Part shown: piece by piece, positions 26,288 to 56,539 of the stretch | Layout: each line of letters begins with the position of its first letter | Numbering within the stretch: position 1 is the first letter of the stretch | From: Macrostomum lignano | Taxonomy: Eukaryota | DNA: 64,000 nucleotides | Assembly (NCBI GenBank): GCA_002269645.1 | Contig: NIVC01001035.1 | Span: 186,001 to 250,000, forward strand | Reading direction: 5' to 3' | Made by a program: the position numbers and the translations under genes | Notes under the pieces: generated by a model | What the model was told of the DNA's origin: nothing | The model's database searches: none | Seen by the model: the letters and a program-made list of their open reading frames with translations, nothing else

Positions 26288-29597
<3,310 letters not shown>

Positions 29598-30307: not shown

Positions 30308-32051
30308 ATGTGCGTCGGATTCACCAACGGTTACAAAGACTTCCCGTACTGGAAGGTCAAGGAGGCCCTGGCCGCCATGACCCCGGGCTCGGCCGTCAGC
30401 TTCAACCGGATCGGCTTGTTCCACTTCGCCATCTACCTCGGCCTCGCCTGGCCCAAGGAGACCCTCGACGAGCCGATCCCGCTGGTGTGCCACTTCTCCG
30501 GCGACGCCAGCTCGGAGCCCATGGCCTCGGTGCGGCTGGACGACTTGCGCGAGGTGGTGCAGAACTCCACGGTGCGGGTGTACAAGTGCAGCTGCGAGCC
30601 GGCCAAGCGGATGCGGGTGGTCAGGGAGAGTCTGGCTCGGGTTGGCGAGGAGGGCTACAACCTGGTGACCAACAACTGCGAGCACTTCGTTCGCGACATC
30701 ATCAACAATAGGAAGTTCAGCTACCAGTCCTTCTGGACGTTTGCTGCGCCGCTGGTGCAGCTGCCCCGGCTGCTCATCGGAGCGCCCATCGGCGGATCCA
30801 TCGCTTCGTCGGCCTCGTTGAGCGCCTGCGTTGCCAGCAGTCTGACAAAATTCGCGTAAGACTTCATCAAACCCAGGGACAACTAAAACCCTGGGACCCA
30901 GGTTTTAGTTGTTCCTGATCAAACCGTTTGATTAAACGAGCTTAAACTATTCATTAGTGCTATCCATATACTAAAAATGATCTGTCGGTATATGTGTGTG
31001 TGATCGATTTTAGCAAAAGTGGCTCAACCGATTTTGTTCGAACTTGCACTGTTGCACTTGCACTTGATTAAACGAGCTTAAACTATTCATTAGTGCTATT
31101 AGTTACTAATAGCGATGGACGATAGAGATTCCAGGTGACATTAGATGACTTACTTACTTGACTTAGCTGCAGGGCGGTCCGAAGACGCAGCGGGGAGGCG
31201 AGCGTCGCTCATTCCGCTAGCCCCTGAGAAGTCCGCATAGGCTAGGGCACGGAGCCAGTCAGGGAGGTCTTCCGGCCCCGTCTGTAGCGTTGTCTTCAGT
31301 GGGGAAGACGGAGGCTCGTTTGGTAGCTCGGAGGAACTTGATGAGTCGTTGGATGTTCTCAGGCCGGCAAGCGTCGTCCAGAGACGGGTTGGGCCCGAGG
31401 TGGTTGAGCCGGTCTCGGTTGCAGGCCGGGCAGTAGCAGAAGAAATGCTTGGCGTCTTCGTTCTCGAAGTTGCAAAAGCGGCAGAGTTCGTTCCGTCGAA
31501 CGCCTCGGAGGAACCGTGGACGTCTGGCAAAGCAACCGTGACCTGTGAAGGTCATAGTGAAAGCGCGGATATCTTTTCGATTTTGGTTCAAAGGATTCTT
31601 CGCAGCTTGAGTGACGGGCAGGGCATGCCGCCCATTAGATGACAATCATGAGCCTTGTCTTTCTTTCAGAGCAAGACATTTATTGCCTCCCAACCGTCTC
31701 TGCAGCTCCTTAGGTCTCATCAATCCCGACATGGATCTCCTCGAGATCTCACTCTCGGGCTCCTCTGGTCTGTCAGCATCCGTTGACGTGAATCCCTGCT
31801 GCACCAAGGTGTACACTGGGCCAAACCAGAGCATCGAGCAGGAGCTGTACCACTGCCTCACCTGCGGCATCACCGGTAGCAGGGTCGTGTGCCGGGCCTG
31901 CGTGTTCATGTGCCACACCGACTGCGACACCAGGTGCTTCAATGACGGTCCAGGATTTTGCGACTGCCAGCACCAAATGTGCCTGGTCAGTTCGGAAGCA
32001 GCTCCATTCGACGAGCCCACTGAGTCTGCGGAATCTGTTGTAAATAGCTGA
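30308..32051 (+). CDS. Gene C: LRAT plus UBR-box-like zinc finger; exons 30308-30855 and 31706-32051
   Basis: FHFAIYLG, VCH and NNCEHF. Phase-2 GTAAG...GCAG intron. Exon 2 reads CTKVYTG..YHCLTC..VCRACVFMCH..FCDC, matching the UBR4/UBR7/FBXO11-type UBR-box pattern. Confidence 0.85.
30964..31063 (+). mobile_element. Short Helentron/HINE-like fragment flanked by a 36-bp direct repeat
   Basis: ATACTAAAAATG...GTGTGTGT...GGCTCAACCGATTTTG resembles non-autonomous Helentron 5' ends. A related reverse copy lies at ~33400-33530. Confidence 0.45.
31150..31632 (-). mobile_element. 5'-truncated LINE 3' end in the gene C intron
   Basis: 11-bp TSD CATTAGATGAC (31139-31149 and 31633-31643). (TAAG)n tail. 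Encodes TGHG...CRFCNFENEDAKHFFCYC, a LINE C-terminal CCHC region. Confidence 0.88.
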
Positions 32052-32684
32052 CCGTGTTTGGATATACCGAGCCAATTTTAACAAAACTGGGCAGTGTCGA
32101 AGCTGCTATTCCATGCACACTGATTGCAAAAACTTTCATTTAGAAATCTCGCTTCGTTTTTTACTGTTAACAGGTGCGTGTACGACTTATTTAAGTGAAT
32201 ATGCGTAATGTTTCATTCGCTGATCTACTGCTCGATTCCTGCTTGAAGTGTTTGTAATTAAAGATCCATACAAAACATACATTGTTACATTATACTATGC
32301 TCCTCTAAACAAAATGAGTGATATAAATATAAGCAGAGTCAGTTTTCTATTCTTAGCCCTCACTTCTCTGTAATTGACGGGAAAATGAACCAAAAATATT
32401 TTCGTTTGGATGTTCAAAAATAAGCATGACACAGCAAGAACGAATGCTATTTTCATATTCCTTGTTCGCGAGAAGAAAGACGTGCGTGCTGGCATTTAAA
32501 GACATCTCGTAGTAAATTTCCAAGAAATTCCTCGAAAAATTTGCATTATCTTACTTGAATAAACTTTACTCTATTTAAGCGTACTAGCAATAGAAAAGTC
32601 TGATCCTTCTGGCTTATTTTAACTTTGCTGTCAGCCAAGCACCCTGTCTAAGACTTTAACCTACCCGAAATTAGGAAACGCGCG

Positions 32685-34271
32685 ATGTGCCTGGACTCAT
32701 TGGAGAGTCGCTGCGAGGGCGATGGTCAACTCTGTAGGGACTTCGGCACAACGGAGGCTGGATTGGCGCGAGCGCTCATCGAAGCATCGCCAGGCTCAAT
32801 CGTCAGCTTTGTGCTCCGGCCCAATCGATCATCTGGAGATCTGATCTGCCATCGACATTTCGGAATCTATCTTGGTCATGCATGGATTGCCAAGTACCAC
32901 CAGGCTCTGGTTTGCCACAGTTACAAAAATCGACTGACAGTGTCGAATTTTCGCGACTTGGCTGAGCTGTCAACGGAAATCCGAGTTTACAAGTGCGACT
33001 GTGACGATGACCGCGACCGCTTTGTTGCTGAGTGCTTCCGCCAGTACGGTAGCTCGCCTGAGGGTACCTGTCTCGCTAGTATCAAACGGATTGTTTCGCC
33101 TGAAAGCACGAAAGAGCCAACGGCTGTTACCAAAGGATGGTTCAAGCGACTGCTGTCGAGGTATGGACCATCGGTTCTCTCGAATTCTGGACTTTTTAAA
33201 TGGCGTCTTGGTGCTCCGGCGCTGCCGAAGACTGATGAACCGCATTGCGCTGTCCTCGACGGGCTGCTCGATTCACTGGCTGGCTTGGATGAAAACTGGT
33301 AAAGACTGAAGTGCAGTTGGATATCTATTTTCTGTTTTTTGTCTATGGTATTCTATGGGATTAATACATCCACTAGGTAACCTATACGATAAAAGCATTC
33401 AAGACCAGTAACACAAGTAAATCTATTGTATCTATTAAAACTTGTTTCATCAAAATTGGCCCAGTAGTTTCGGAGGAGATATGAAACGCACATTACATAC
33501 AAACAGCGCGTCACTTTTAGTATATTGAGTGTTCTCACACAGCCTTTTGCGACCTTACAGAACTACCTGAAGACGTACAACCTGTAGTCTTCAAGTGCCA
33601 AAAGTTTTGATTCGTCAATCTTTTCAGAGATCTATGGGGTCTTACCAAAATCGCATGCCGAAATTTGCCCGCATAAGATTTCCGAATGCCCTGAATATTT
33701 TCTATTTGGCATTAGCTACAGAGGGGGACACTCTGTATACAGGGGTGAGGGTCATTTACAGACTTTAGTAGCAACTACAAATTGAAATGATCCCTGGGAC
33801 TGCTGCTGGAAGGTTGCCAATAACCTTCTTTAGAAGGCAGGCATTCAGGCAGATACATGTAAACTTCCTGTCGTCAAAGTTTTGCAAAACGATCCACAGA
33901 GTCTTTCTTCTAAACCATTTCGCAGTCTCATCGGCCTACTGAGCTCAAAGTTGGACATGCTTGAGGTCACTCTACACAGACAGCAAGTGGTCAGCTCTGC
34001 CAGCCCTAGCACTGCCATCCGCATCAGCAATCGCTGCACTCGAGACTTCACGGGTGAGGATGCCCAGGCTCACCAGGAGTTGCACGAGTGCCTCACCTGC
34101 GGCATCCGCGACGATCAAGCGATCTGCAAGCGCTGCGCAGAAGTGTGCCACGCCAATTGCTGCACCCAGAGGCTCAACGTGGATAAAGCTCGAGAAGTGA
34201 CAGGGTACTGCGACTGTACACATGACTGCTCACCCGAGCTCAAGCAGGATTCCCATCGGAACCGATCCTAA
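32685..34271 (+). CDS. Gene D: divergent LRAT plus UBR-box-like finger; exons 32685-33298 and 33926-34271
   Basis: RHFGIYLG and VCH are kept. The NC motif has diverged to GTCLASI. Phase-2 intron. Exon 2 reads CTRDFTG..ECLTC..ICKRCAEVCH..YCDC. Confidence 0.8.
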
Positions 34272-35323
34272 ATGTTGGCATGAGTTGATTCCATTCGAAG
34301 AAACGTATTACATGTACCATCAACCATGTATAAAATATCATTTAAATACGCTCGTACATTGGTCTCTACTGTTATGCCTACGTGATCGTTAATTTTGCTT
34401 ATATAAAAGTAATGTCGCACGGATTAGAACAGTGAGGCATCGACAATTCAAGTTAGGATGAATCACATTGGCCACTATAATTCCGAGTGCTTACTCGTCA
34501 TCGCTCGCATTACTATATAAACCTAAACCCATTGGTGATAATCTCTTTCCACTCGTGTTCACTGTTAATTTCCCATTCACATCCATTAAGAAAGTCAATT
34601 AGTTTCTGCACCTGCCGTGGCTAATATGTAACTAAAACCTGTGACAAAAATTGTTTTTACTTGCGCCATTTTTTACTTTAGTACCTGCCGACATGCGGTT
34701 TATCTCTTCTCTTTCTTAAATATTGCTGTTACGTACATTAGTATTGAGTATGCACTACCCGACCTGGGGTCGCTGACAAATATGTAATTTTACATTACAT
34801 CGACGTTCAGCCGACGTTTGACGACTTTTATTGCTGTACGGGGTGTGTTGTTTTGTACAATTCCATTAAATACTATTCCTAATACAACTAATATGTTTAG
34901 CTAATAAAAGCATCATTTGCATTCGCAAGCGAGAAGCCATTAAAATACAAAGCATACAAGAGATTAATAAACGACATAAACTAGCTGCATGGATCTCTCT
35001 CATTGTGGCGTGGACGTACGCTCGCAGCCAGCCAGAAAAAAATTCAAGGGTGTAAAAAGACCTGTTGAAAAATACGCGTACATATTAAAACAGTGTGGAC
35101 TTGCTAATTCTCGTAATGAAACGTTAATATAGAGCGTTTGAGATAAAAATAGAATGACGGTTAGAGAGAGTGTACAGAGAATGCGTACAGCTCGTAAAGA
35201 TAAGTGTACAGCGAAGCAAGTTCTGTCGCTTACAAGAAGCCGCAATTTTCCAGACTGTGGTTTGCTGTCGCTAATGCCCCCCGCAACATTTTGTAGAATT
35301 CGTTAATTCTAGCTAAATTAGCT

Positions 35324-38300
35324 ATGCTGCCTCCAGCTAAAAAGAAATCAAGAAAGCGAATACCTTCAGAAGTCTATGAAGACTTTATGATGGCCATTGT
35401 GACCAATGACACTGAAATTATTGACGAGTTCTTGAAGATTAAGCCACCACTCGACAAAAGAGTGTCATTTCTAGACGACAGTATGACACCCCTGACGCTC
35501 ACGTGTCTTCTCGGGAAGCCAGAAATTCTAAGAAAGCTAATTAAGGCCAACGCTGACGTCGACGTAAAAGAACTTAACGACACTTCGCCACTGTACGTTG
35601 CTGCTCAAGAAGGACACGACAAGATCGCGGACCTTCTAATTGAAGCGCAAGCGGAAATCGACTTCCAAAGCGCGGACGGGACTTCACCTCTTTACCTGGC
35701 TTCGCAGCACGGCCATCACAGAGTGGTGAGGTCGCTCATCGAAGCTCAGGCAAGTGTCGATTTACGAAGAAGCAACGGAGCATCGGCGCTGTGTATTGCG
35801 GCCCAGAACGGGCATCGGCTCGTGACCGACTTGCTGATCAGAGCTCAGGCGGATGTCAACATTCGGGCGGACAATAGCACAACACCTTTGTACATAGCTT
35901 CGCACAACGGCCACCATCTCATCGTTGAATTGCTGCTCAAGGCTCGGGCCGATCCAAACCTGCTACACTCTGACGGTACTTTTCCACTGTACGTTGCCGC
36001 TTACAATGGTCACTATCAAGTGGTTTCACTGATAGTCGATGCCGGCGCGGAAGTCAATCTGCGAGACAGTCAAGGCTGTTCCTCGTTGATCATCGCCTCA
36101 CAAAATGGTCACCGGCAAGTAGTAGATGTGCTCATTTCCGCAAACGTCGATGTCAATCTTCCAGCTAACAATGGCGCAACGCCGATCTACATGGCCTCGC
36201 AGGAAGGTCATAAGCAAGTGGTCGACGTGCTTATCAAAGCACAGGCTGATATAAACCTTTTAGCGAATGGCGATGCTTCGCCAATTTATACGGCAGCTCA
36301 GGAGGGTCACGACCAAGTGGTTGACTCCCTTATCCATGCGAATGCCGATGTCAATTTTCAGAGGAGCAATGGCCAATCGCTTCTATTTATTGCCGCGCAG
36401 GAGGGTCACGAGAAGGTTGTGGAATTGCTTCTGAAATCGGGCGCAGACCCCGACCTACCAACTGGCAACGGTTGGTTGCCTCTGCACGCAGCTTGCAAAC
36501 AAGGTCACCACATGGTCGCTGATCTTCTTATCAAAGCCCAGTCTGATATTAATCACTTGGCTCAAGGCAGCCTGTCGCCTCTGCTATTGGCTATTGAACA
36601 AGGTCACAGCAGAGTTGTAGAGCTACTCATCAAAGCGCAAGCCGAAGTCGACCTAACAATCTCAACAGGAGTATCCCTTTTCGAAGTGGCTAAAATGCTG
36701 GGTCATGACCGAGTGACAGCACTACTTCAGGAAGCAACCGCGAGTTCCACGGCGTCGTCTGAGACCCTTCAGGCAAACGAATTAAAGAATTCAAAGTAAC
36801 AAAGGGTTTTTTTATTTCGTCAACTACTTTGAAGTACTACTTATTTTAGATAGCAAAAGCTTAAAATTTACACTAATGTTACTCTTCAGACAAGCGCTAG
36901 AGGACGTTCAATTGAGCTTGGAACTAAACTCAACCCTTACTAAGGCAGGGTTTGTGAGCTCCCGAGCTGCAATGCAGAGCGTATTGGCTGACGTTCTTCA
37001 AGAGATTCTTCGAAAGCGATGGAATGGTGGCCAAATCTTCGTAGTTGGAAGCTACTCTGAAGGCTGGGGAAACAGTCTAAAAACGTTGGACGGCAGACCC
37101 GATGTAGAGTCCGACATAGACGTGATGAGGCTCATAGATGGGAGACTTTACCACCTGAATTACCGGTGCAACTGCTCCGAAGATGAGAAACTATTGGTGA
37201 ACTACGAGAATGGGCACATATTTTGTCCTGGATATGGTCTGTGCTAATTTGTTCATCATGTAAAAATCAACTTGCCTCACCGGTCTTAATGCGCCCGTTT
37301 ATGTTTGCTTTCAGCTTCAACTCCCGCGAACCCGACAACCGGCTCCAATCTGAGGCCAGCTGTGGACGAAGTGAGCGGCGTTCGGCTCTGCTGCTACCCC
37401 CTCATCGCACCTCTGCTTACGCAGAGACTCGAAGACTCCCAAATCCCCGGCTCGGTTTTAAGTGCTCTTCAACAGGAACTAACCTCGTCGCCATGTCACG
37501 TGGTACACGCCGCACCGCCCGGACACGCTGGTGAGCAGCTCCGGTTGAGCACAACTTTTTTAGAGAGGCGCCTGTTGCGAAGTCTCAGCACTCTACAAGG
37601 TCAGCTCTTTGTTACCATCAAGTACATAGTAAAAAAGGTCATTTGTCACAAAGAAGGCTTCAATGCGGCGGGTTTGAAGGCGTATCACATGAAAACAATT
37701 ACGTTTCGAATGCTCGAGCGAACACCAAGAGAGATCTGGAAGCCGGAGAACTTAGTATTCCTCATCAGAGAGTCCCTGCTCATGCTGATTAATGACGTGA
37801 GAAACGGCTGCACACCTCAGAATACAGATGGTCGAATCATGGATCACTTTTTCCTATGCGACGCCGCGCTCTACCTCAAAGGTGTCGATCGCAGCCAGTC
37901 GATGCTGCAGACTTTGGAAGCAACAATCCAAGTCTTGGAAGAAGTGACAGCGAATTTGCCTCAGTTTATACTGAAGTTTATAAAAAGTTTGAAACCAGTC
38001 AGCGACTCAGGAAGATTCTACTTTCATCCCTTCCTCATCTTGCCGTATCTTAACCAAAATCCCATTCCACTATCTGGGAGAATTGAGTACCACGAAATTT
38101 ACGATGTCGTCCGAAAATCATTGCTTTGCCTGACCCACGACGGCAGCAGCTATCAGTCGCAACTGTATCTCACAGAGATTATCGCTAGGCTACCAGACAG
38201 TGCCCGCACAACCCGTGAGGTTCTCAGAGCGCTGGCGTGTCTAAAGTTCGGATACAAGGACTCTGCCAAGAAGATAATAAAGTACACCAGGTCCTTCAAG

Positions 38301-38825
38301 GTGAGCCGAGGCTTTGATTTACAAGCGGAGGACCTTTTAGCTGCCGAAGCGACTCCGGAGAAAGTGTGGAATCATCTGAGAACTCAAGATTCTGCCTGGA
38401 AATTCAACTTTCATTTTGAGACGAGGCCAGAATTTCAGTTTCTTCCCGAGCTCTGGGCCGCCTGCTTCCCAACTCAGACGCTGAATTTTGACACCTGCTT
38501 TTACATCAACTTTGATGCCATGCTGCAAAGCATGCGCTTTCAACTGTTAGTGGACGAGGAGGAGACGACTGTCCAGTCTTGGATCCGTGATGTGGCCGGG
38601 CGGGAGGACGCCGACGAGCAGGAAGTGACGGTGGCGCTGCTCTGCTTGCGCGATGAAGCATTGTTCAAACCATTGCTGGACCGAGCGCAGTGGTTTCCGG
38701 CAGGAATTCCTAAGAGGATCCTTGAGGAGCTGAAGGCTAGATTTCGAGAGGACAATTGGAACGACTCTAGCCAATGGGGTCTTCAGCAGCTAAACCAAAT
38801 TTTAGAACGCTTGCTTCTTCGCTAA
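35324..38825 (+). CDS. Gene E: 13 ankyrin repeats plus a Mab-21/cGAS-like nucleotidyltransferase (cGLR); exons 35324-36795, 36890-37236, 37315-38825 (1109 aa)
   Basis: Ankyrin consensus (SPLYVAAQEGH) recurs 13 times. NTase GSYSEG...ESDIDVM, with a probable third Asp in VDEVSG. Mab-21 C-lobe motifs AYHMKTITF, WKPENL and DHFF. Both introns are phase-compatible. Confidence 0.85.
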
Positions 38826-40310: not shown

Positions 40311-41838
40311 ATGTGCGTGAGGCTCAAGACCGGATTCACCGATTTCAAGCCGCAAAGAATTCGCAATGCGATTCGAGCCACAGTTCCCGGAGGCGCCGTC
40401 AGCTTCAACAGGATCGGCTTCCACCACTTCGCCATCTTCCTGGGCTGGGCCCGGCCCAAAGGCGACGACTCGGAGCCGATCCCACTGCTGTGCCACCTCT
40501 CCGGGGACGCCACCAGTCATCCGACATCGGTTCGACTGGAAGACTTCAGAGACATCGTGCAGAATAGCATCATCCGAGTCTATAGGTGCTACTGCAGCGC
40601 TAGCAGGAGATCCCAGGTGATACTGGAGTGCCTCTATCGAGTTGGCACCATCGGATTCAACCCCGTCACTAACAACTGCGAGCACTTCGTTCGGCAGGTG
40701 ATTTGCGGTGAGAAAGTCAGCCACCAGACCAATCTGACGCTGGCTGTGCCGCTGCTCCGCCTGCCCCGGCTCATCGTCGGCAGCTCGATGGTGGGCGCGG
40801 CGGCGTTGTCGGAGTCGTTCAGCTGCGCCGGGAAATTAGAGGACAGCAGGTAAATGTGCTCACCCCCTGTTTATGAATAGAGTCCTCGACATTTTACTGC
40901 CACGAATTGACTGCCGACGCTAACCCTATCCTAAATCCTAATCCAAAGCCAAACCTAAACCCTAGTCTAAACCCTAACCTAAACCCTAGCCTAAACCTTA
41001 ACCTAAGCCTTAACCGAAACCCTAACCTAAAGCCTAATCTAAACCATAACCTAAGCCTCAACCTAAACCCTAACCTAAACCCTAACCTAAGCCTCAACCT
41101 AAACCCTAAGCTAAACTCTAACCTAAGCCTCGACATAAACCCTAAACTAAAGTCTAATCTAAAACTTAACCTAAGCCTTAACCTAAATCCTAACCTAAAG
41201 CCTAATCTAAGCCATAACCTTATAGCCCTAACCTAAACCCTAACCTAAACCTTAACCCTATATCGTCGGCAGTCAAACGCCAGGCTCCCGATTGTAAAAA
41301 AACTGGGAACTAATTCCATGCATAATGTTAAATAGCATGAGCCTTTAATGTGAGTGCATCTTTCAAGCAATAAAATATTTTGGTCATAGTATCGAAATTG
41401 AAGCCAGTTAAAAATTACAGGTAAAGTCAAAACCTAATAAGCAATCATTAAAATGGTTTCCATTCCAGATCTCTGGGTGTGCTCAATCCCGACATGGATT
41501 TGATTGAGATCACCCTGTCAAATCGAGGTCTGAATTTGACCAGCATCAAGCTAAACGCCAGCTGCACAAGAGATTTCGAAGGCTGCAGCCGCTTTTGCAA
41601 GCAGACTCTGTACAGTTGCAACACCTGCGCAGGTGCTGCAGTTTGCAAGACGTGCCAGAAGTTCTGTCACAAGGACTGCCAGCTCACAGCGGGCAAGGTG
41701 CAGGACGGTCAGTGCCACTGCACCCACAGCAAGAGAAAAGAGGCGACTCAGTTGCACCCAAAAATGATTTCAGAAATCAAGTCTCAAAGAGAAATTGAAA
41801 TGGTCTTGAATGATTCATTCAGAATTACAGTTGGCTAA
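40311..41838 (+). CDS. Gene F: LRAT plus UBR-box-like finger; exons 40311-40849 and 41469-41838
   Basis: FHHFAIFLG, LCH, NNCEHF. Phase-2 intron. Exon 2 starts SLGVLNPDMDL and continues CNTC..CKTC..CH..CHC. Confidence 0.85.
40907..41276. mobile_element. Inverted-repeat-bounded element filled with degenerate (CCTAAA/CCCTAA)n
   Basis: Perfect 13-bp inverted repeats TTGACTGCCGACG (40907-40919) and CGTCGGCAGTCAA (41264-41276) flank telomere-like hexamers. Confidence 0.7.
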
Positions 41839-43479: not shown

Positions 43480-44833
43480 ATGTGCGTTGGATTTCTAAAC
43501 GGCTACAAAGACTTCAAGCCGAAGCTGCTCAACGAGGCGATCGCCGCCGCAGTTCCCGGGTTCGCGGTCAGCTTCGACAGGATCGGCTTCTTTCACTTCG
43601 CCGTCTTCCTGGGCTGGGCCTGGCCCAAGGGCGGCGACTCGGAGCCCATCCCGCTGCTGTGCCACCTCTCCGGAGACGCCAGCACGAAGCCGATGGCGTC
43701 TGTTCGACTTGACGACTTCAGAGACATCGTCCAGAGCTGCACCATCCGAGTGTACAACTGCAAATTCAGCGCGAAAAAGAGATCCCAGGTGATACTGGAG
43801 TGTCTCTATCGAGTTGGCAAGATCGGTTACAACCCGCTGACCAACAACTGCGAGCACTTCGTCCGGGGAGTGATCTGCGGCGAGCGCGTCAGCTACCAGA
43901 CCCGCTGGATTCTGGCTGCCCCGATAGTGCAAGTGCCGCGCATCGTCGTCAGCACTGCGTTTCTGGGGGCCGCCACCTCCGCTGCTTCGTCCAGCTGCAT
44001 ATCGAAACTCGAGACTAAAAGGTGAGGGATCAAGGTTCTTTTACAGAATCACTACTAAATTTTTACTCTTCAATGGATTGCCTTTTATCAACCTCAAAAT
44101 TGAAACTGAACTTCACAAAGTTCGAAATTTTACATCGTCAACTTTTTTCAAGTTGTGAACTAGCGGAAGTGGCTGGAGTAGTGATTTCGAGATTGCGAAA
44201 GATTCTGCTTTTATGAGACGATGTGCAATCCACAAAAGTCATGGAGTTCAAATCATGGGGACCAAATAATGTTAGCTAAAGTATGCAGCTCTATCTTGGA
44301 CTTGATGACATTTGGATTCCAAACCCAAGTAGGTCACATGTTCGGAAGTGAAAAGATCTCTGAATATTTGAGTGTATTCGCCAGCTGTTATAATGTGCTT
44401 GTTAAGTGCGAGTTAGATCAGTACGTTTACATGAAAACCATTGCTATTCCGCACGAATATCTCATCAAGAAAGCAACTTGCAATCTTCATCAGGTCCCTA
44501 GGTCTTCTAAATCCAGAGATGGACCTGGTTGAAATCCTCGTATCAAACAAGGGCCTGAATTTGAAAGGCATCAGACTGAATGCCAGCTGCACAAAGGATT
44601 TTGATGGCTCCAATCGATTTCCGATGCAGACGCTTTACAACTGTGAGTTCTGCAACGGCAGCAACTCAATCGCTGTGTGCAAGCCCTGCTCGAAACTCTG
44701 CCATCCAACTTGTGGATCGCTAGAAGGCTCCGTGACCGAAGGTTCATGTCGTTGCAGCCACCTGTCCATCTCAAAAGCGGCAACACAAACGACTCAACAG
44801 ACTTTGAAGAGTTCAGGCACTTACACCCCATAA
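43480..44833 (+). CDS. Gene G: LRAT plus UBR-box-like finger; exons 43480-44021 and 44494-44833
   Basis: FFHFAVFLG, LCH, NNCEHF. GTGAG...TCAG phase-2 intron. Exon 2 starts SLGLLNPEMDL and continues CEFC..CKPC..CH..CRC. Confidence 0.87.
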
Positions 44834-46150: not shown

Positions 46151-47159
46151 CTAACGTTTCTTCCTCCTCTTGAAACGGCGAATCTCCAATTCACACAAAG
46201 CGTCAATAGAAGGATCATTGAATAGACCAAGAGCAGCAGCAGGCAGCTCAGGCTCATCGATCAGTTCAGCCGGTTCTTCGCTCTCCTGCCGGCCGTGACT
46301 GCATCGACACACGTCCGAAATGACGTAACTCACACAGTTGGTTAGGGAGCCCCCGTGGCACCCTTCCCTACAGGGCCTGCAGACTACTTGATTCGAACTG
46401 CTGTGGTAAAGTTCCTGCACAAAGCGAGCGTCCTTGCACGCAAAAAAGTCAGCAGTACATTTGGCGTATTTCTGAACAGTTGCACTGAGCCCGTTATTGT
46501 CAACCATGATCTCCAGCAGGTCCATCAGAGGATCGAACAGGCCGTACGAACTTCGATTTGAAAATATGTTTTTAAGTGTCCAGAAGGATAACATTAGGAA
46601 AATTTATTTTAATTTTGACTCACCCATTCGTTAAGCTAATTTTGCAGCACTTCATTGCAAGGGCCGACGAAGATGAGCTCCAGAAGACAGTACCGAGAGG
46701 GAGTCTTGGAATCTGTAGTACAGCAAGGCGAGCTTGGTAGCTCTTCTTTTCTCCTTTTCCATTGATAACCTCGCGAACAAAATGTTCGCAGTTATTCTTC
46801 ATTAGATTGTAGTTGGTCTCTCCGACTCGTTTTAGGCAGTCCAGCACTACTCGAGCTCGCTTCTCGGCGCTACACTTGCAGTGGAAAACTCGAATGGGAG
46901 AAAGTCCGACAACGTCGCGGAAGTCATCGATTCGAACGGAAACTCTTGCATTCGAAGCAACTTCGCCCGAGAAGTGACACAGGAGAGGCACCGGGTCCGA
47001 TTGCCCACCTCTGGGGAAGGCCCAACCTAGGAAGATGGCGAAGTGGCCAAGAGCGACTCGATTAAAGCTGATGGCGGAGCCTGGGACCATGGCTTTCAGA
47101 GCGTCATCGGCCCGCGATGCTGAAAAATCGTCGTAGCCATTTGTAAAACCGACACACAT
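46151..47159 (-). CDS. Gene H: LRAT plus degenerate UBR-box-like finger; exons 47159-46624 and 46550-46151
   Basis: GHFAIFLG, LCH, NNCEHF. 73-bp phase-2 intron. The finger lacks the first CxxC (YHSSSN). Confidence 0.82.
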
Positions 47160-47688
47160 TTTTCTAAACTTTTGTGTGAAATACACTTGATGGCGTGAAA
47201 ACAAACAGCCTTACTACACTAATACAATAGAGATATAATAGAGAGAAATATGGAACCAAAGACTTGAAGGTATTTCCATGGAATTTCCTTTAGTTTTATC
47301 TTCTATATCTTTCAAAAACATCAGACTCGCCTTTCACCACCGTACAATGGTATAGAAAGGTATTTTACTTTTAAAGCCACAGGTAGCATAAAAGCGTACT
47401 CGCTGTACAAAAGGACGCAAACAAATTCGCAAGTGCGTCCAAGGTCTTTCACGCGTCACTTTAGTTCTGTACAATCTGCGTATGACCAACTCAGCATGTA
47501 GGTTGTTGCGCTTCAGTCGAATTTCAGTCGAAAAAGCAAGTAGATTGCAGATTGGCTTGCACAAACAATGAACTTGGCGTAGTGCTCTAGAAAAAAAACT
47601 GCAGCAGAGCGTACTAGATAGTTTATCAGCCAACAAACTGTCTCGGCTGTCCAAAAAGGATCTTGTTTACCACATTTCACCTCAAGTC

Positions 47689-48671
47689 ATGTGTGTCGGC
47701 TTTACAAACGGCTACTCGGACTTTGCGTCGGACAGAGTCGAAGAAGCGATCGTTGCCGCCGTGCCCGGGTCCGCGGTCAGCTTCAACAGGATCGGCTTCT
47801 TTCACTTCGCCGTTTTCCTAGGCTGGGCCTGGCCCAAGGGCGACGACTCGGAGCCCATTCCGCTGCTGTGCCACCTATCCGGAGACGCCAGCACAAAGCC
47901 GATGGCGTCTGTTCGACTTGACGACTTCAGAGACATCGTCCAGAGCTGCACCATCCGGGTGTACAACTGCAAATGCAGCGCGAGCAAGAGATCTCAGGTG
48001 ATCCTCAATTGCCTCTATCTAGTTGGCAAGGCTGGCTACAATCCGCTGACCAACAACTGCGAGCACTTTGTGAGAGAAGTGATTTGCGGTCAGAGCACCA
48101 GCTATCAGGCCGTTTGGACTCTTGCAGCTCCGTTAGTTCAGCTGCCGCGAATTCTTCTGGGTAGCGCTGTAGTCGGGGCCGCCACTTCGTCTGCTTCATC
48201 GAACTGCGCATCCAAATTTGAGGAGAATCGGTAAATGTTTAGAAATTCTTTACTTTTTCTGCATCCTGATGCATGGTTATTCATTGCCTGCTTTCCCATT
48301 TCAGATCACTGGGACTTCTTAATCCGGAAAGAGATCTAATAGAGATTATATTGTCAAAAAAGCATGGTTTACATTTACAAGGCGTCAAGTTGAATTCTGT
48401 CTGCACAAGGGAATTCGGAGGCTTAAGCACCTTTCCAATGCAGTTTCTCTACACTTGCAGAAGCTGCAGCGGCAGTGAAAAGATGGCGGTGTGCCGGCCA
48501 TGTCAGAAGCTTTGCCATGCAAAATGCATTTTTCGAACTGGAATTGTGTCTGAGAATGTGTGCCGGTGCTCTCACGCCATGAAATCAGAGGCAGTGCAGC
48601 TGCCTCTGCAACTGGATCTTCAAGAAGAATCTACTTCATCAGTCGAAGGCAACGAGGGTGGATCTTGTTAG
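47689..48671 (+). CDS. Gene I: LRAT plus UBR-box-like finger; exons 47689-48230 and 48305-48671
   Basis: Intact His/His/NC motifs. 74-bp phase-2 intron. Finger CRSC..CRPC..CH..CRC. Transcribed divergently from gene H. Confidence 0.87.
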
Positions 48672-48770
48672 CCCTTTATTTTACAAAAGCACATATGGTT
48701 TTAAGCATTTTTCTACATTGGACTACATTATGTTTCCTTAATGTTTCTGTTTATCAGTGAGAAAGATTCT

Positions 48771-48892
48771 GGGCCCGTTCTATGAAGCCATCGTAAGATA
48801 AGATCGTTCTTAGCTCCTACATGTATCTCCGCAGTGAAAAAGTTCCGACTTACGATCGAACCTACGCTACGACAGCTTTATAGTACGACCCC
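48771..48892. mobile_element. Small MITE (Harbinger-like termini); duplicate at 56639-56760
   Basis: Imperfect TIRs GGGCCCGTTCTATGAAGC and GCTTTATAGTACGACCC. Confidence 0.5.
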
Positions 48893-49739
48893 ATTATTCT
48901 TAAGCTATGAATCTTTTTAACTGATATTTTAGTAACAATCCCAGGCTTCATAATGCTTTCAGTTTTCTGTACAGCTTTTATTATTGTTAAAGACAATTAA
49001 GACGTTTTCGATGGTTTTGAAGCAAATCTTTTTAACTAACCACTTACACGTGCTTTTTACGGCACTTTCTGGGTGTATGTGACAGAGTAAACTACACAGC
49101 CACAAGTCTACTGAGATGGTAAAGAAATTGAGTTGCGGTCCAAAATTATACTGCCACTAGTAGATTGTAGTGTTGCAAAATTAATCGACCAATTCAAAGC
49201 CCCAAGTATACTAGTACGAGTAGTTTGTTTTCGTGTTGTGCACGCAGCTATTCGAAAAAGAAATGCGAAAAGCTTATTTAACTTTAGTATGCAAAAGCGA
49301 GTATTAATAAAACTAACCCGCTGTCCATTAAAGTTCTGAAATGAGAATTAGTAATTAAGGTAGCAATACTACAGAGTAACTATACGAGTCGTAGACATAA
49401 CTCATATTATAATACGCTCGTATTGCGTTGTCCATGCAGTCGTCCTCGCAAGTTTGAGGACTTCTCATATGCGCACGCAAGTACGGAGTTACAGGGAAGA
49501 TAAAGAGGGGAGCTTTTTAACTGTGTGGCAGTCAGGTTACATTCTGCATTCAATGTAAGTTTTTGCTTCCAATGCTTCTAAGAATAAGGAACTTCATTCT
49601 TCTATTGTTTCTGGCGTTATGTAGCTACTCGTACCAGTAAGTAGAATATTACGTATATCGTGACGGGTATCGTGCTAGCAAGCATCTAGGAGCGTAATGC
49701 AGAGCCCGTATTTCTGATCACCACCGACAAAGAAGACAA

Positions 49740-51323
49740 GAGAGACTGATGGCTACTCCAACCAGAGGGATTTTCTAGCTTCCATCGACTGCAGCGCATC
49801 TTTGCTTGGGTGTTGAGTTTCATTCAAAACTGTCAGAAGGAAAAGTATCAGCAAAGCAGCGGTGGTGGATGACCTCGAGGAGGTGAAGGAGCGTTTAGTA
49901 AGGTTTTTAGCTCAGGAAGAAGCGTTCAAGGCGGATGCAGTGACTGAGAAGAAGCTGCGGTGCTTGCAGTCGCTACGTGATGCGGCAGGAGTTCTACGAG
50001 TGGATGGCCGGTTGAAATTCAGGCCACTGGCGCCATTTGCAGCAAGACATCTGGCTATATTGCCGCGAAAGAATTGGATCACCAAGCTGATTATTTCACA
50101 ATATCACGAGCAGCAGAGCCACGGTGGGATAAACCAAACGCTGGCGGCGTTTTCAGCCAATTATCTGTGCTCGGGAAGCTATTCGCGAGTGGGAGGTCGA
50201 ATGTGCTGTGTGCAAGAGAGAGAAAGCTCGTCCCGTCGCGCAACAGATGGCTCCATTGCCTGATGTCCGCGTCGAAGGCTCCTTAAAAGCCTTCACAAAC
50301 GTAGCCATCGACATGGGAGGGCCGTTCGTCACTATTCAAGGCCGATTCAAGAAGAGGCAAAAATTCTATTTGGCGCTGTTCACATGCCTCGAGACACGAG
50401 CGGTACACCTCGAAATGACCTATTGCCTTGACGCGGACTCATTTTTGAATGACTTCTACCGAAATGTGAACCGGCGTGGCTTACCCAAGGCTATGTATTC
50501 TGACAACGGCGACAACTTTGCCACAGGTGCAGATGAGCTCCGACTTCTGGAGGAGCTGGACAGGACCAATGTCAGTCGCGAGACATCCAGGCAGCGAGGC
50601 AGCGAGTCAAGTGGAACTTTTAGCCGCCAGCTGCCCCACACTTTGGTGGAGCGCACGAGGTGATGATTATGGGTGACGCCGATGTCACCGATGAGGAGCT
50701 TCAGTCGGCGAGCACCGGAGCGGAGGCGCTGATCAACTGGCGCCCCATCACCTACCAATCGACGAATTCGAGAGACGAGGAGCCACTATTGCCAAATCAT
50801 TTCCTGCACGGTCAGGCTGATGGAAAATTTGCGCCAGATGTGTCCGACGATGTCGCGGCTGATCCGAGGCGGTAGTGGCGGCGCGTTCAAGAACTCGTGA
50901 GGCACGTCTGGCGACGCTGGATGCACGAGTGGTGGCCAGGGTTGCAACCGAGGGTCAAGTGGGCGGCGGTCGCTTTCATAAGACCAAAATTTCGCAACGC
51001 CAAAAACAACTGCATGGTCTTTCACAAGACCGAAACCTCATAAGACCGAAATTTCACATCGTAAAAAACTTAATGCAACAAGGACCATGCAGAATTTTCC
51101 GCGTTGTGAAATTTCGGTCTTATGAAGCCCCCCCCCCGTGGCGAGATGTGCAGCCAGGTGGTGTCGTCCTCGTCATCAAAGCAGACTCGCCGCGGGGACA
51201 CTGCCCGTTGGGACGAGTAGTCGAGGTCTACCCGGGTCCAGACAACCGAGCTCGGGTGGCCAGGGTCAGGTCGGGGGAACGGTATTCGTTCGATCTGTGA
51301 GCAAGCTGTGTTACCTCGAGTGA
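49740..51323 (+). pseudogene. Decayed BEL/Pao LTR-retrotransposon integrase region
   Basis: Frameshifted fragments QQMAPLP, FTCLETRAVHLE, YSDNGDNF, LPNHFLHG and the BEL C-terminal DUF5641-type PLGRVVEVYPGPD. Confidence 0.9.
50963..51137. mobile_element. MITE inserted in the BEL/Pao relic
   Basis: TIRs CTTTCATAAGACCAAAATTTCGCAACGC and GCGTTGTGAAATTTCGGTCTTATGAAG. GTGG is duplicated at 50959-50962 and 51138-51141. Removal restores RVKW-RDVQ. Confidence 0.8.
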
Positions 51324-51615
51324 GATGCGTTGATTATTGTTTAAGACTGTTAATTTTCTTTTCTGGACTTTTCTGATTTGGTTGAGTTTTCATTTTTGTG
51401 TTGTATCGTGTACCTCCAGAATGTGTTTTTGGCCAGTTTTGGGCTTTTTAAGCCGGGTTGTTTGTTTGATTATTGGTTTGTTTCTTTGTTTTTTGGTTTC
51501 TGGTTACCGATTTTGAAACTGGTTCTAAGTTTTTTTTTCATTTTGAACGCAGTTGGTGCATTTTTTCTAATCTTCCCGCTGCGATTGTGATGTCATCTTT
51601 TAAAAACCAGGACTT

Positions 51616-52098
51616 GCCTGGGCGGCCTTCGGTTCGATTCGGGCCGTCGTCCAGTCCGAAGCGCTGCCCGACCACCAGAGGGCTCGGCTGTAGCAGGCTG
51701 TAGTCGAAACCGTCCTGCTCTACAACGCCGAGACGTGGACGCTGACGGCTACGCTGGAGCGGCAGCTGGCCTCGGCGTACTCAGGGCTGCTCCGTGCGGC
51801 CTTTCGAGCTGACGAGAGCGTCGGGACCGAGGCCCTGTACGATCGGGCCAAGCTGCAGCGCCCGTCCACTATCCTGTGCCGGGGGCGACTACAATTGGCG
51901 GGCCACGTGATCTGGGCCGAGGGCTTCTGCCCCCAACTAGTTCAGGACGTCCTGCTGCTCACTTTGCAGGGCCCGTTCAGGCGGGGTCAGGAGCGAACCC
52001 GTCGATACGTGGACTGCCTGCTGTGCGACGCTGGGGCGCCCGACACTGCCAACGGAGCGGACTTCGTTCGCTCCCAGGCTCTGCGGCGCGCCATCTGA
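51616..52098 (+). pseudogene. 3' fragment of an RTE-like LINE reverse transcriptase
   Basis: AWAAFGSI...VVETVLLYNAETWTLT...RLQLAGHV, with an internal stop. Confidence 0.85.
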
Positions 52099-53039
52099 CG
52101 CGCCCTGTTCTTTGACTTTACATTTTGTTGTTGTTTTTAAGACCAATAATTTCATGCGCAGGTGCGAGGGCGAAGTGTGTCTTCTTTTTTGCAATGTAAT
52201 TTTTTCTGCTCCTAGCTAGAGTTCAGGCCCCTCTGCAGCGGTTTTTTCAAATTTTCTGTTGAAGTTATGCTTGAGGTTTTCTTACGTAAGTCTACTCTTT
52301 CGACTTAATTTACAATTGCGAGTTTAAGATAATTTTTTTCAAATGTTTCTATATTTTTTGTAATGCTCAGCATTCGAACTTTTGTTTCAGTTTTCTATCT
52401 TTTTGTGACGGTACCCTTTGTTAGATGCACTTTCCTACAGTATATTGACAAGCCCAACCCCCAGCTCTGAGTTTTGTAAATCCGCTGTACCCATCCCCAT
52501 TTTACACATAAGTGCTAGGTAAGGGCGCAAAGTTGCGGTCTCTCGCTCCAGAAGAGAAGAGTTCGTGTGTGTGTTTTGCTTAGCTAATTCTGTCATTGGC
52601 CTGTAGCCGTAAAGACGATCTCTTATTATTGTGAAGACTCATTTTTTGTATGACTGGAGAAGAGCGTCAAATCACGGCCTCCCAATCCTGTCAGAGGAAT
52701 CCCCAGAAAGTGACAGGTGCGGCCATTAATCATCCGATTTCTATACAATTGATTTATGAGCCTAGCTCAGCATGACAAGTCCAGATTCAATATATAAATA
52801 TACATTATATCGGGGATAAATAGGAGAGTGAATAGGATAATCCGCGAAATAAATATGATTAAGAGAAATATACCGGTGTATTTAGGAGGTAAAGATGCAA
52901 GGCGTGTAACATTGATTTTATTTGCAATAAATCTGGTTGGATCTGTAAATATCTGTGGATTGTTGTGTAACTAAGTGCATCTAAACTATTGGCAACGCAT
53001 TTTGTACGACTGATATTTAATCATGATCTTCCACAACTG

Positions 53040-54074
53040 TTAAATGGTTGTCTTACAGCATACAGAGGAAGAACGTCTCCTTCTTCTCAAACTGAAAATT
53101 TCCACTTCCCACAAGGCGTCGATAGCCGGTGTATTGAATAGACCAGGAGGAGCAGAGGGCAACTCAGGCTCATCGATCAGTTCAACCGGTTCTTCGTTTT
53201 CCTGTCGGCCGTGACTGCACCGACACACGTCCGAAACGACGTAGCTGAGAGAGTTGGTTCGAGAGTTCCCGTAGCACTCTTTCCTACAGTGCCTGCAGAC
53301 TACTTGATTCGAACTGCTGTGGTAAAGTTCCTGCACAAACCGAGCGTCCTTGCGCGTAAAAAAGTCAGCAGTACATTTAGCATATTTTTTAGCAGTTGTT
53401 TTGAGCCCGTTATTGTCAACCATGACCTCCAGCAGGTCCATCAGGGGATCGATCAGGCCGTACGAACTGCGATTCGAAAAGGGTTCTAAAAGTGACCAGG
53501 AAGATAGCGTAAGGAAAAATTTTCTAATTAAGCCTCACCCATTCATTATGCCAAATTCGGAGCCCCTTGATGAAACAGCCGACGAAGATGAGCCCCAGAA
53601 GACAGTACTGAGAAGAAGTCTTGGAAACTGTGGCAGAGCAAGGCGAACTTGGTAGCTCTTCTTTTCTCCTTTTTCATTGATAACCTCGCGAACAAAATGT
53701 TCACAGTTATTTTTTATTAGATTGTAGTTGGTCTCTGCAACTCGTTCTAAGCACTCCAGCACTACTCGAGCTCGCTTCTCGGCGCTACACTTGCAGTGGA
53801 AAACTCGAATGGGAGAAAGTCCGACAACGTCGCAGAAGTCATTGATTCGGACGGAAACTTTTGGATTCGAAGCAGCTTCGCCGGAGAAGTGACACAGGAG
53901 AGGCACGGGGTCCGATTGCCCACCTCTGGGGAAGGCCCAACCTAGGAAGATGGCGAAGTGGCCAAGAGCGACTCGATTAAAGCTGATGGCGGAGCCTGGG
54001 ACCATGGCTTTCAGAGCGTCATCGGCCCGCGATGCTGAAAAATCGTCGTAGCCATTTGTAAAACCGACACACAT
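53040..54074 (-). CDS. Gene J: LRAT plus degenerate UBR-box-like finger (paralogue of H); exons 54074-53539 and 53466-53040
   Basis: First 66 aa are identical to gene H. NNCEHF intact. Canonical GTGAG...GCAG phase-2 intron. Confidence 0.85.
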
Positions 54075-54627
54075 TTTTCTAAACTTTTGTGTGAAACTTT
54101 TCGGCTCTTCCGAAAAAATACATTACGGATATAGGAGGTTTTCTTTTTTCAGCACGAAAGATGCTGTTGCTTTTGATAGGAGGCAGACCCAATGTTCATC
54201 TTTTGATATTCCTAGAAGACATTGACTTGTTGATCCTTAACAGATCTTATCTATCTTCTTGGGTTGCTGCACAAGTACTTGCAAGAACGTGCAAGATCTT
54301 CGCTATGATAATACTTAGGCAAACTTACCAGATCTTGGCGATTTGCTACATCGAACAAGATCTTAACTTTTATATCTTTTTATAGCTTTGAATCGCATAT
54401 TTTAATAAATTTATTGTCCCATTTTTCCATAAAATAAAAAGTAATAAAGCTAGAATACTGTTTAAATGAATGACAAAACAAATGTACCCCCCTTCCTAAG
54501 ATCCGGCAACAACCGAGCAGATTGAGAAGATCTGCTAAGAATGGCACAGAGACAAGATCTGCTAAGTTTGAGAAACAGAAATGTCCTCTAGGGATGTTTT
54601 GATTTTCTTAAAGCCTTTTCGTTCAGA

Positions 54628-54932
54628 GGGGTTATAGCTTAATGATTAGAGCGTCGAACTCACAGCTTGAAGGTCGGGAGTTCGAATCCTGATCCTATTG
54701 AAAAAATCTGTGTCCTTGAGCAAGACAATTAACTCTGCATTGCTTCAGTTCACTCAGCTGGAAAAATGGGTGCCAGCATTAGCTGGGGTAATATCGACCC
54801 CCAGTCCGTACACTGAACAGCCGTACTCAGCCTTCAGATGCGCCGCGCAATAGCTGCGGCTGAGCTGTTATGGTTTCGCATCTGGCTCGACCGGGGCATG
54901 TGTAATCAAATAATATTACTATTATTATCATT
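54628..54932 (+). mobile_element. tRNA-derived SINE, copy 3 (full length, AT-rich tail)
   Basis: A box TAGCTTAATGATTAGAGC, B box GTTCGAATCC, CORE-like body and TATT-rich tail. Confidence 0.88.
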
Positions 54933-55559
54933 TAGAATATAATTCTATGCTAATTTTATATATTTTGAATAGAAGTATATCCTGTACATGTCCCGTACCT
55001 AAAAATCATAAAAATATCAATAATATAATCAATATATTATAAATAATAATATATATCAAAAATTATAAAACAAATTAGAGCTGAGATGCGCTATTCTTTG
55101 GTTATTAGGCACATGACATGTACGATTGTATGGCTCGTACGTAGGATACAAAATTGACAACACAGAATCCTAGTTTTCTGCCAATAGCTACCACTGGCAC
55201 TGGTTTGTATTTAAGCAGTAGCTGTGCAGCACTAAGCTATAAATAAGAGCTATAACTTTCGTGAAAATCTCGAAAAATGCTCTATTAGAGAAAATGCTGA
55301 ACAATGTGCCCCCACAGCAACAAATGCTACGCATACTCCGCTGGGCATAAAAGCAGAGACTTTATCAAAAAAGCAAGTGGCTTGCACATTCGCTTGCACA
55401 ATAAATGAACTTAACGCAATGCTCTGTAAAAAAACTGCAGCCGCAGAGCGTACCCTCGTACTAGATAGTTTATCTACCTACAAACCTACAAAAATATTTA
55501 CCCACAAACTGTCTCAGCTGTCCAGAAAGGATCTTGTTTACCACATTTCACCTCAAGCA

Positions 55560-56539
55560 ATGTGCGTCGGCTTTACAAACGGCTACTCGGACTTTGCGTC
55601 GGACAGAGTCGAAGAAGCGATCGTTGCCGCCGTGCCTGGGTCCGCCGTCAGCTTCAACAGAATCGGCTTCTTTCACTTCGCCGTTTTCCTGGGCTGGGCC
55701 TGGCCCAAGGGCGACGACTCGGAGCCCATTCCGCTGCTGTGCCACCTCTCCGGAGACGCCAGCACGAAGCCGATGGCGTCTGTTCGACTTGACGACTTCA
55801 GAGACATCGTCCAGAGCTGCACCATCCGGGTGTACAACTGCAAATGCAGCGCGAGCAAGAGATCTCAGGTGATCCTCAATTGCCTCTATCTAGTTGGCAA
55901 GGCTGGCTACAATCCGCTGACCAACAACTGCGAGCACTTTGTGAGAGATATGATTTGCGGTCAGAGCACCAGCTATCAGGCCGTTTGGACTCTTGCAGCT
56001 CCGTTAGTTCAGCTGCCGCGAATTCTTCTGGGTAGCGCTGTAGTCGGGGCCGCCACTTCGTCTGCTTCATCGAACTGCGCATCCAAATTTGAGGAGAATC
56101 GGTAAATGTTGAGAAATTGTTTACTTTTTCTGCATCCTGATGCATGGTTATTCACTGCCTGCTTACCCATTTCAGATCACTGGGACTTCTTAATCCGGAA
56201 AGAGATCTAATAGAGATTATATTGTCAAAAAAGCATGGTTTACATTTACAAGGCGTCAAGTTGAATTCTGTCTGCACAAGGGAATTCGGAGGCTTAAGCA
56301 CGTTTCCAATGCAGTTTCTCTACACCTGCAGAAGCTGCAGCGGCAGTGAAAAGATGGCGGTGTGCCGGCCATGCCAGAAGCTTTGCCATGCGAAATGTAT
56401 TTTTCGAACTGGAATTGTGTCTGAGAATGTGTGCCGGTGCTCTCACGCCATGAAATCAGAGGCAGTGCAGCTGCCTCTGCAACTGGAAGAGTCTACTTCA
56501 TCAGTCGAAGGCGACGGCTCTCTCTCATCTTCTTGTTAG
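55560..56539 (+). CDS. Gene K: LRAT plus UBR-box-like finger (near-identical to gene I); exons 55560-56101 and 56176-56539
   Basis: Same motifs and intron as gene I. Confidence 0.87.

Follow-up and report, generated by a model that had tools for sequence, protein, structure and literature searches.

We examined a cluster of LRAT-related genes in a stretch of 64,000 nucleotides of the Macrostomum lignano genome (contig NIVC01001035.1, positions 186,001 to 250,000 of the forward strand). This whole stretch is referred to as the window, and all positions are counted from its first nucleotide. Between 30308 and 56539, the window contains eight pairs of open reading frames (ORFs), which constitute genes C, D, F, G, H, I, J and K, all of them intact and consisting of two exons. 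The two ORFs of a pair lie on one strand, with an ORF of ~180 residues carrying LRAT motifs followed by a Cys-rich ORF of 120–145 residues. The interval runs from the start codon of gene C (30308), which opens the conserved MCVGF, to the stop codon of gene K (56539). An earlier note on this DNA had described these pairs as fusions of an LRAT domain to a zinc finger of the UBR-box type, and all eight pairs were found at the positions it gave. The exons are as follows, with a caret marking the boundary between exon and intron.

Gene C exon 1: 30308..30855, + strand; LRAT/PLAAT-type domain (FHFAIYLG, LVCHF, NNCEHFV) and a hydrophobic/Ser-rich tail; Pfam LRAT 50.7 bits; donor GC^GTAAGA.
Gene C exon 2: 31706..32051, + strand; β-rich linker and predicted UBR box (31800-31973) with CHTDC and FCDCQH; equivalent of UBR4 Asp1715 kept; zf-UBR 20.0 bits.
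Gene D exon 1: 32685..33298, + strand; very divergent LRAT-like domain, below Pfam LRAT; 200 bits with the window LRAT hidden Markov model.
Gene D exon 2: 33926..34271, + strand; linker and predicted UBR box (34035-34223) with CHANC and YCDCTH; zf-UBR 16.7 bits.
Gene F exon 1: 40311..40849, + strand; LRAT domain.
Gene F exon 2: 41469..41838, + strand; linker and predicted UBR box (41563-41727) with CHKDC and QCHCTH; no zf-UBR match; family profile 116.6 bits.
Gene G exon 1: 43480..44021, + strand; LRAT domain.
Gene G exon 2: 44494..44833, + strand; linker and predicted UBR box (44588-44761) with CHPTC and SCRCSH; zf-UBR 17.8 bits.
Gene H exon 1: 46624..47159, - strand; LRAT domain.
Gene H exon 2: 46151..46550, - strand; linker and reduced, predicted UBR box (46295-46459) with CHGGS and VCRCSH; first CxxC lost; seven candidate binuclear ligands kept.
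Gene I exon 1: 47689..48230, + strand; LRAT domain.
Gene I exon 2: 48305..48671, + strand; linker and predicted UBR box (48402-48575) with CHAKC and VCRCSH; zf-UBR 22.5 bits; preceded by an intron of 74 nt (48231-48304).
Gene J exon 1: 53539..54074, - strand; LRAT domain, duplicate of that of gene H.
Gene J exon 2: 53040..53466, - strand; linker and reduced, predicted UBR box (53211-53375) with CYGNS (His lost) and VCRCSH; first CxxC lost.
Gene K exon 1: 55560..56101, + strand; LRAT domain, duplicate of that of gene I.
Gene K exon 2: 56176..56539, + strand; linker and predicted UBR box (56273-56446) with the same protein sequence as the box of gene I; zf-UBR 22.5 bits.

The first ORF of all eight pairs ends in xG^GT(A/G)A, and its stop codon is thus part of a splice donor. 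In the second ORF, a polypyrimidine-AG acceptor lies one base upstream of a conserved S-L/Y-G-L motif, again in all eight. Every pair is interrupted by a phase-2 GT-AG intron of 72–850 nt at one common position, all 16 exons are open and the splice signals are intact throughout. The predicted spliced products consist of 293–320 residues, counted from the MCVGF start. Conceptually spliced gene I is 97% identical to an M. lignano protein (P0001, GenBank BOX15_Mlig006329g2) over 100% of the query. The GenBank gene of P0001 spans 986 nt, which corresponds to the coding sequence plus an intron of 74 nt, as predicted for gene I. The annotation behind this entry was built from RNA sequencing and transcriptome assemblies (PMC5730564). 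A UniRef/UniProt entry (P0005) is identical in sequence to spliced gene H, and gene F has close copies in two further database proteins (P0002 and P0003). Both P0001 and P0005 join the LRAT and Cys-rich exons exactly as predicted here; with the eight phase-2 introns, they bear out the joining of the two exons that the earlier note had assumed.

Genes J and K are a segmental duplicate of the divergent pair H/I, with DNA blocks that are 86% and 92% identical, and are separated from it by an integrase-bearing retroelement fragment. By eye, integrase-like fragments are recognizable at 49862-51300 (+ strand), between genes I and J. A reverse-transcriptase tail fragment, likewise identified by eye, lies inside the intron of gene C (31259-31645, - strand), and a repeat reading LNPN/LNPS occupies 40894-41236, inside the intron of gene F.

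On the evidence of its intact motifs, exon 1 is predicted to encode a thiol acyl-enzyme domain of the LRAT/PLAAT type, i.e. a permuted NlpC/P60 domain. Seven of the eight copies match Pfam LRAT (PF04970, gathering cut-off 24.3 bits), the best with 50.7 bits (E=2.8e-13); gene D has no match. The closest solved structure to the family profile is PLAAT4, in an alignment that covers both the H-box and the NCEHF motif. The H-box, xHF[AG][IV][FY]LG, is present in all copies and NNCEHFV in seven (GTCLASI in gene D). Three residues are invariant, the His of the H-box, the His of an L-x-C-H motif and the Cys of NCEHF, and all three are kept even in gene D. The family has the H-box (HF.I.LG), the NCEHF motif and a hydrophobic stretch after the catalytic core in common with PLAAT/HRASLS and LRAT proteins, although it differs from them by an insertion of ~11 residues between the two His residues, and by continuing into a linker and a zinc finger rather than ending. 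Outside the family, the next-best LRAT relatives are found at E~1e-4 in a search with the full-length profile. The LRAT core is followed by a connector of ~45 residues that is hydrophobic and Ser-rich with an invariant Pro-Arg. Whereas PLAAT1-5 have a C-terminal transmembrane anchor, the hydrophobic stretch of the family is weak, and it is the hydropathy maximum in genes F, G, I and K only. A transmembrane-anchor reading of the connector was considered; its hydropathy is borderline for a membrane helix.

Exon 2 opens with a conserved linker of ~30 residues (LGLLNPxMDLLEIxLSxxGL), which AlphaFold2 models at low confidence as three β-strands. The finger that follows has the Cys layout C..Q.LY.CxxC..VCxxCxxxCHxxC..CxCxH, and sequence profiles and a structure model identify it as a real, although atypical, UBR box of the UBR4/FBXO11 class. 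Individual sequences match Pfam zf-UBR (PF02207) below its gathering cut-off of 25.2 bits (gene C, 20.0; D, 16.7; G, 17.8; I and K, 22.5 bits), or not at all (F, H and J). These matches are all confined to positions 2-55 or 2-56 of the 69 positions of the Pfam model. Because the scores are below threshold, databases label these proteins as LRAT alone. With a profile of the family, the best solved structures are UBR4 (E=1.5e-7) and FBXO11/UBR6 (6e-6 and 1e-5), followed by weaker matches to the boxes of PRT6, UBR1 and UBR5; no solved UBR7 box is among the structure matches. Alignment of the family with 19 canonical UBR boxes by hhalign gave a probability of 98.9% and E=2.9e-17 over 62 columns.

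An AlphaFold2 model of exon 2 of gene C has a mean predicted local distance difference test score (pLDDT) of 73.5, rising to ~88–89 in the core of the finger. The best 15 Foldseek matches of this model in the PDB are all boxes of UBR4, UBR5 or UBR6, headed by UBR4 (8J9Q_A) with a probability of 1.00 and a target-normalised template modelling (TM) score of 0.63. The first match of another fold, a B-box (TRIM28; E=2.1, probability 0.44), ranks below these 15 UBR boxes. Neither C1 nor zf-B_box was matched in a Pfam scan of the fingers with E up to 10, and the profile search of the PDB, at the same limit, contains no C1 or B-box chain. C1, B-box, PHD and ZZ fingers were thus rejected, with Pfam, the PDB profile search and Foldseek all against them. 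The assignment to the UBR4/FBXO11 type in the earlier note, which had considered an unrelated fold such as a B-box, agrees with all three of the profile, hhalign and Foldseek, the last by way of the predicted model.

UBR boxes bind zinc through a Cys2His2 site, formed by the first CxxC and HxxH, and a binuclear cluster of seven ligands (PMC10687169, PMC5606531). In the UBR4-7 subfamily, the ligands of the cluster include a Cys before the first His and a Cys 8–9 residues after CxC (PMC10687169, PMC5606531). Seven residues are invariant in the M. lignano family: the first Cys, the second CxxC, the Cys of CH, CxC and the His two residues after CxC. In number, these seven would fit the binuclear cluster. 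The six Cys among them are equivalent to C835, C865, C868, C872, C888 and C890 of FBXO11. The usual C-terminal seventh ligand (FBXO11 C899, UBR4 C1724) is absent, and the family has no counterpart of the last ~13 positions of the Pfam model. The mononuclear site consists of CxxC and HxxC, four ligands of the C2HC type, in genes C, D, F, G, I and K, where the second His of CHxxH is replaced by Cys, as the earlier note had observed; such a CHxxC variant is rare, with 4 instances among 349 related fingers. Genes H and J have lost the first CxxC, as had also been noticed; in both, the last Cys is replaced by Ser, and gene J has CY instead of CH. As a result, gene H retains only the His of the mononuclear site and gene J none of its four ligands. 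Since the CxxC and HxxC lost in H/J make up exactly this separate site, the loss of a whole site fits better than random decay.

Compared with UBR4 (8J9Q/8J9R) and FBXO11/UBR6 (7YRB/5VMD), which are its best profile and fold matches, the family has the layout C..Q..Y.CxxC..VCxxCxxxCH....CxC in common. It also contains, as an invariant residue, the extra Cys before the His that is found in this second subfamily (FBXO11 Cys872). It differs from both in the C2HC site of six copies and the absence of that site in H/J, and from UBR4 in having an invariant His two residues after CxC instead of an equivalent of Cys1724. The family box is also attached to an LRAT enzyme and not to a ubiquitin-ligase scaffold.

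The Asp between the cysteines of CxC (UBR2 Asp150, UBR4 Asp1715) binds the α-amino group of N-degrons, together with the preceding backbone carbonyl, in UBR2 and UBR4 (PMC10687169). In contrast to UBR4 and FBXO11, the family keeps this Asp in only two of eight copies, C (FCDC) and D (YCDC); it is replaced by His in gene F (QCHC) and by Arg in genes G, H, I, J and K (x-C-R-C). An unlinked paralog, P0004, has Gln at this position (FCQC). The position aligned with UBR4 Phe1671 is a Phe in F, G, I and K. As the Asp survives in C and D alone, canonical N-degron reading is unlikely for most copies, and on this alignment it would be plausible for two at most. The suggestion of the earlier note that the fingers might read N-degrons, including neo-N-termini generated by caspases, is weakened by the replacement of the Asp in the other six.

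Divergence is faster in the finger than in the LRAT core, as had been proposed, and the number of non-synonymous substitutions per site (dN) of the finger is 2–4 times that of the core. The identities of finger and core are 55% and 86% for G/I (dN 0.41 vs 0.09) and 33% and 64% for C/I (dN 0.79 vs 0.28), and the dN of F/I is 0.46 in the finger and 0.19 in the core. The exception is the pair D/C, with a finger identity of 41% and a core identity of 36%. Where it could be estimated, the finger ratio of dN to synonymous substitutions per site (dS) is 0.26–0.61, i.e. below 1, with dS often saturated. The youngest pair, I/K, differs by 12 synonymous and 2 non-synonymous codons overall, of which the linker and finger contain 5 and 0, respectively. 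The linker and finger of H/J differ by 17 non-synonymous and 7 synonymous codons.

A search of 1.84 billion representative proteins with the finger profile yielded 153 matches; 138 of the 147 that were scanned are Pfam zf-UBR proteins. Family members score 109–116 bits against their own profile, compared to 44.5 bits for the best single domain outside, so the finger family appears as a well-separated clade. Among the scanned matches, LRAT and UBR are joined in two M. lignano representative proteins only. Word-indexed searches with gene I and the full-length profile returned five M. lignano clusters and, at E~1e-4, generic PLAAT-like proteins. Neither the LRAT-UBR architecture nor the locus tag was found in the literature searched. 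By these searches, LRAT-UBR is a new architecture of two known domains, restricted to M. lignano among the matches scanned. The box variant, as predicted from the alignment (C2HC, a CxCxH end and Asp replaced by Arg), is likewise one that was not found in the literature searched or outside Macrostomum.

UBR boxes combine with many other domains (PMC4506424). Among the finger-profile matches, UBR boxes stand beside calpain, astacin, protein-kinase, AIG1 and RING domains, or are repeated up to 18 times in one protein; judged by these predicted architectures, the UBR box is clearly a mobile module. These fusions and multi-UBR proteins resemble the M. lignano family in placing UBR boxes beside enzyme domains. 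They differ from it in that none of those scanned contains LRAT, that their boxes are canonical (CHxxH, F/Y-C-D-C-G) and that their best single domains reach at most 44.5 bits, versus 109–116 bits for the family. P0006 and P0007, two of the matches, contain 18 and 13 tandem canonical UBR boxes, and small proteins of ~250 residues with three UBR boxes are also present.

LRAT exons followed by other second exons are located on both sides of the array:

Gene A: 23031-25417, + strand; LRAT-like exon, then a caspase exon (Peptidase_C14, E about 1e-32).
Gene B: 26192-29597, + strand; LRAT-like exon, then a caspase exon (Peptidase_C14, E about 1e-32).
Gene L: 58964-60013, + strand; LRAT exon to 59499, then an intron (59500-59862) that shares its position and phase-2 donor with the family, and a second exon that keeps the linker DYGLMDPEGDMLLISVSSSGLQ.

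In gene A, the Cys of NCEHF is lost (AELFEHF) and the caspase retains QACRG; gene B keeps NNCEHF and has QTSQK where QACRG is expected. The LRAT-like exon of gene A ends in the phase-2 donor of the family (TT^GTGAGT), and an acceptor of compatible phase precedes the caspase exon. The joining of LRAT to caspase in gene A is thus compatible with the splice phases, which makes it a candidate fusion. A database search with the caspase exon of gene B returned only caspases of ~35% identity that lack LRAT, and no database protein confirms the fusion in gene A or gene B. With its differing second exons, the LRAT exon behaves as a shared module at the N-terminus to which various C-terminal modules can be attached, which is the main reason to regard the finger as an adaptor rather than as the core of the protein.

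The eight genes form a tandemly duplicated LRAT-UBR family restricted to Macrostomum; its domain identities, the joining of the two exons, the zinc-ligand pattern and the lineage restriction are well supported by the results above. On balance, we consider it probable, by no great degree, that in this family a PLAAT-like acyl enzyme has its partner or location set by an atypical docking finger of the UBR type. The predicted product is a protein of ~300 residues in four parts: an LRAT/PLAAT domain, the connector of ~45 residues, the β-rich linker and one C-terminal UBR box. The LRAT domain is probably catalytic and, by analogy with PLAATs, is predicted to be a phospholipase or acyltransferase. 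The finger would likely serve as a zinc-stabilised module for docking proteins or peptides and thereby determine the site of action or the partner of each paralog. Docking would probably differ from canonical type-1 N-degron recognition, possibly except in C and D, because the Asp that binds the α-amino group is Arg or His in most copies. For UBR boxes without N-degron binding, a role in protein-protein contacts has been proposed (PMC4506424, PMC5606531). Relaxed purifying selection on the finger after duplication would have produced paralogs with different binding surfaces.

Several observations weigh against this reading. The equivalents of the UBR4 contact residues (E1670, F1671, F1713 and D1715) rank 12th-23rd of 58 columns in variability; the pocket-equivalent columns vary no more than other non-ligand columns and are not hypervariable. 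With no concentration of the variation in the pocket, the divergence may reflect plain relaxation and not the tuning of specificity. The earlier note had taken the faster divergence as that expected of a specificity module. This part of its reading is weakened: finger dN/dS is below 1, the I/K fingers have no non-synonymous difference and the pocket columns are not more variable. The faster divergence itself is confirmed, whereas the results do not demonstrate a module tuned for specificity. The family has a ninth member, gene L, that dispenses with the zinc finger, as its second exon ends after 49 residues, and other copies look decayed as well (D below Pfam LRAT, J without the His of CH). 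In the LRAT domain, the insertion of ~11 residues makes the alignment of the L-x-C-H His with the second catalytic His of PLAATs (PLAAT3 His35) ambiguous in the comparison with PLAAT4. The connector, with a best 19-residue Kyte-Doolittle mean of 1.25–1.76, is borderline as a membrane anchor. The His of CxCxH may replace the C-terminal seventh zinc ligand, a role suggested by its invariance only. Finally, the full-length AlphaFold2 model of gene I has a mean pLDDT of 39.3, which is too low for inter-domain geometry.

Alternatively, the finger could be a regulatory or structural appendage, such as an autoinhibitory lid or a dimerisation element, whose sequence is free to drift outside the zinc ligands. 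This would be consistent with the spread of variation across all non-ligand columns, with the loss of the finger in gene L and of one zinc site in H/J, and with the retention of the linker even in gene L, by which the linker belongs with the LRAT part. The box of FBXO11 also forms zinc-mediated dimers (PMC5606531). However, the 5 synonymous and 0 non-synonymous differences between the I and K fingers indicate that more than the ligands has been constrained, at least recently, and we regard an appendage as doubtful.

In a second alternative, the fingers are canonical N-recognins that bind free N-termini, including caspase neo-N-termini, and bring the LRAT enzyme to cleaved proteins. Boxes that bind N-degrons, such as that of UBR4, are the closest relatives in fold and sequence, C and D retain the F/Y-C-D-C motif, the Phe equivalent to UBR4 Phe1671 is found in four copies (F, G, I and K) and caspase exons occur within the same cluster. 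The His of gene F and the Arg of genes G, H, I, J and K at the position of the Asp argue otherwise, as Arg should repel an ammonium group. FBXO11 (UBR6), whose box is the second-closest solved structure, UBR3 and UBR7 do not bind N-degrons (PMC5606531). We therefore judge this role of the fingers unlikely.

It is very unlikely that the array consists largely of decaying duplicates with no distinct function for each copy. Such decay could account for gene D falling below Pfam LRAT, for the fingerless gene L, for the 17 non-synonymous against 7 synonymous differences in the linker and finger of H/J, for the lost His in the CH of gene J, and for the retroelement fragments between copies and within the intron of gene C. 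It is difficult to reconcile with 16 open exons, with splice signals that are intact in every copy, with the strong purifying selection seen in I/K and with several copies matching gene models that are based on transcripts or held in UniProt.

PLAAT domains form an acyl-thioester and transfer acyl chains to amines. By analogy, the family could conceivably constitute a terminus-directed system of protein modification, in which the finger docks a terminus or a charged peptide and the LRAT domain acylates or hydrolyses the docked protein, possibly as part of a caspase-linked death or immune module; we give this only a slight chance. Genes C and D would then dock a free N-terminus and the copies bearing Arg a negatively charged group, with the neighbouring LRAT-caspase and ankyrin/Mab-21-like genes as possible partners. 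Least credible is a Cys-rich exon that encodes a C1 (phorbol-ester/diacylglycerol) or another lipid-binding finger anchoring the enzyme to membranes: a finger that binds membranes would suit a PLAAT-like enzyme, the UniRef name of P0003 is 'Phorbol-ester/DAG-type domain-containing protein' and CxxCxxxCHxxC agrees with CxxCx4HxxC, a sub-motif of C1, but the Pfam, PDB profile and Foldseek searches described above contain no C1 match, and hhalign aligned the family to UBR boxes with 98.9% probability.

To our knowledge, almost all known UBR boxes read substrates for ubiquitin ligases. The box described here is joined to a lipid-acyl/thiol enzyme domain, and in most copies Arg has taken the place of the Asp that binds the N-terminus. 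If the finger is a working docking module, it would widen both the range of what UBR boxes read and the known means of targeting PLAAT-like enzymes. In addition, the zinc sites of the UBR box occur here in natural variants (C2HC, one site lost, a shortened C-terminus), which could be used to probe the tolerance of the fold. For now, its occurrence in a single flatworm lineage leaves the family with modest wider importance.

Other genes and repeats are present in the window. Between genes D and F (35324-38825, + strand), an ORF of 491 residues with ankyrin repeats is accompanied by ORFs at 36876-37247 and 37305-38825, the latter matching Mab-21_C weakly, below the threshold (E=0.002). These ORFs may form one ankyrin/Mab-21-like gene. 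A trinucleotide run after the LRAT exon of gene B (about 26900-27700) reads as poly-Y, poly-L or poly-T, and tandem arrays lie upstream at 18839-19726 and 20240-20709. Retroelements were recognized by eye from their motifs at 3492-13496 (- strand). They comprise a non-LTR (long terminal repeat) ORF of 1353 residues, with a FADD reverse-transcriptase motif and C-terminal zinc fingers, and an LTR-type pol of 1656 residues (YMDD, integrase) that is preceded by a CCHC gag. On a related M. lignano contig (NIVC01003758.1, 16993-18537), the next downstream gene encodes a different LRAT protein, called as 620 residues, with several N-terminal zinc ribbons. A Cys-rich ORF resembling a zinc ribbon near the 3′ end of the window (62237-62452) could be the start of a similar gene.

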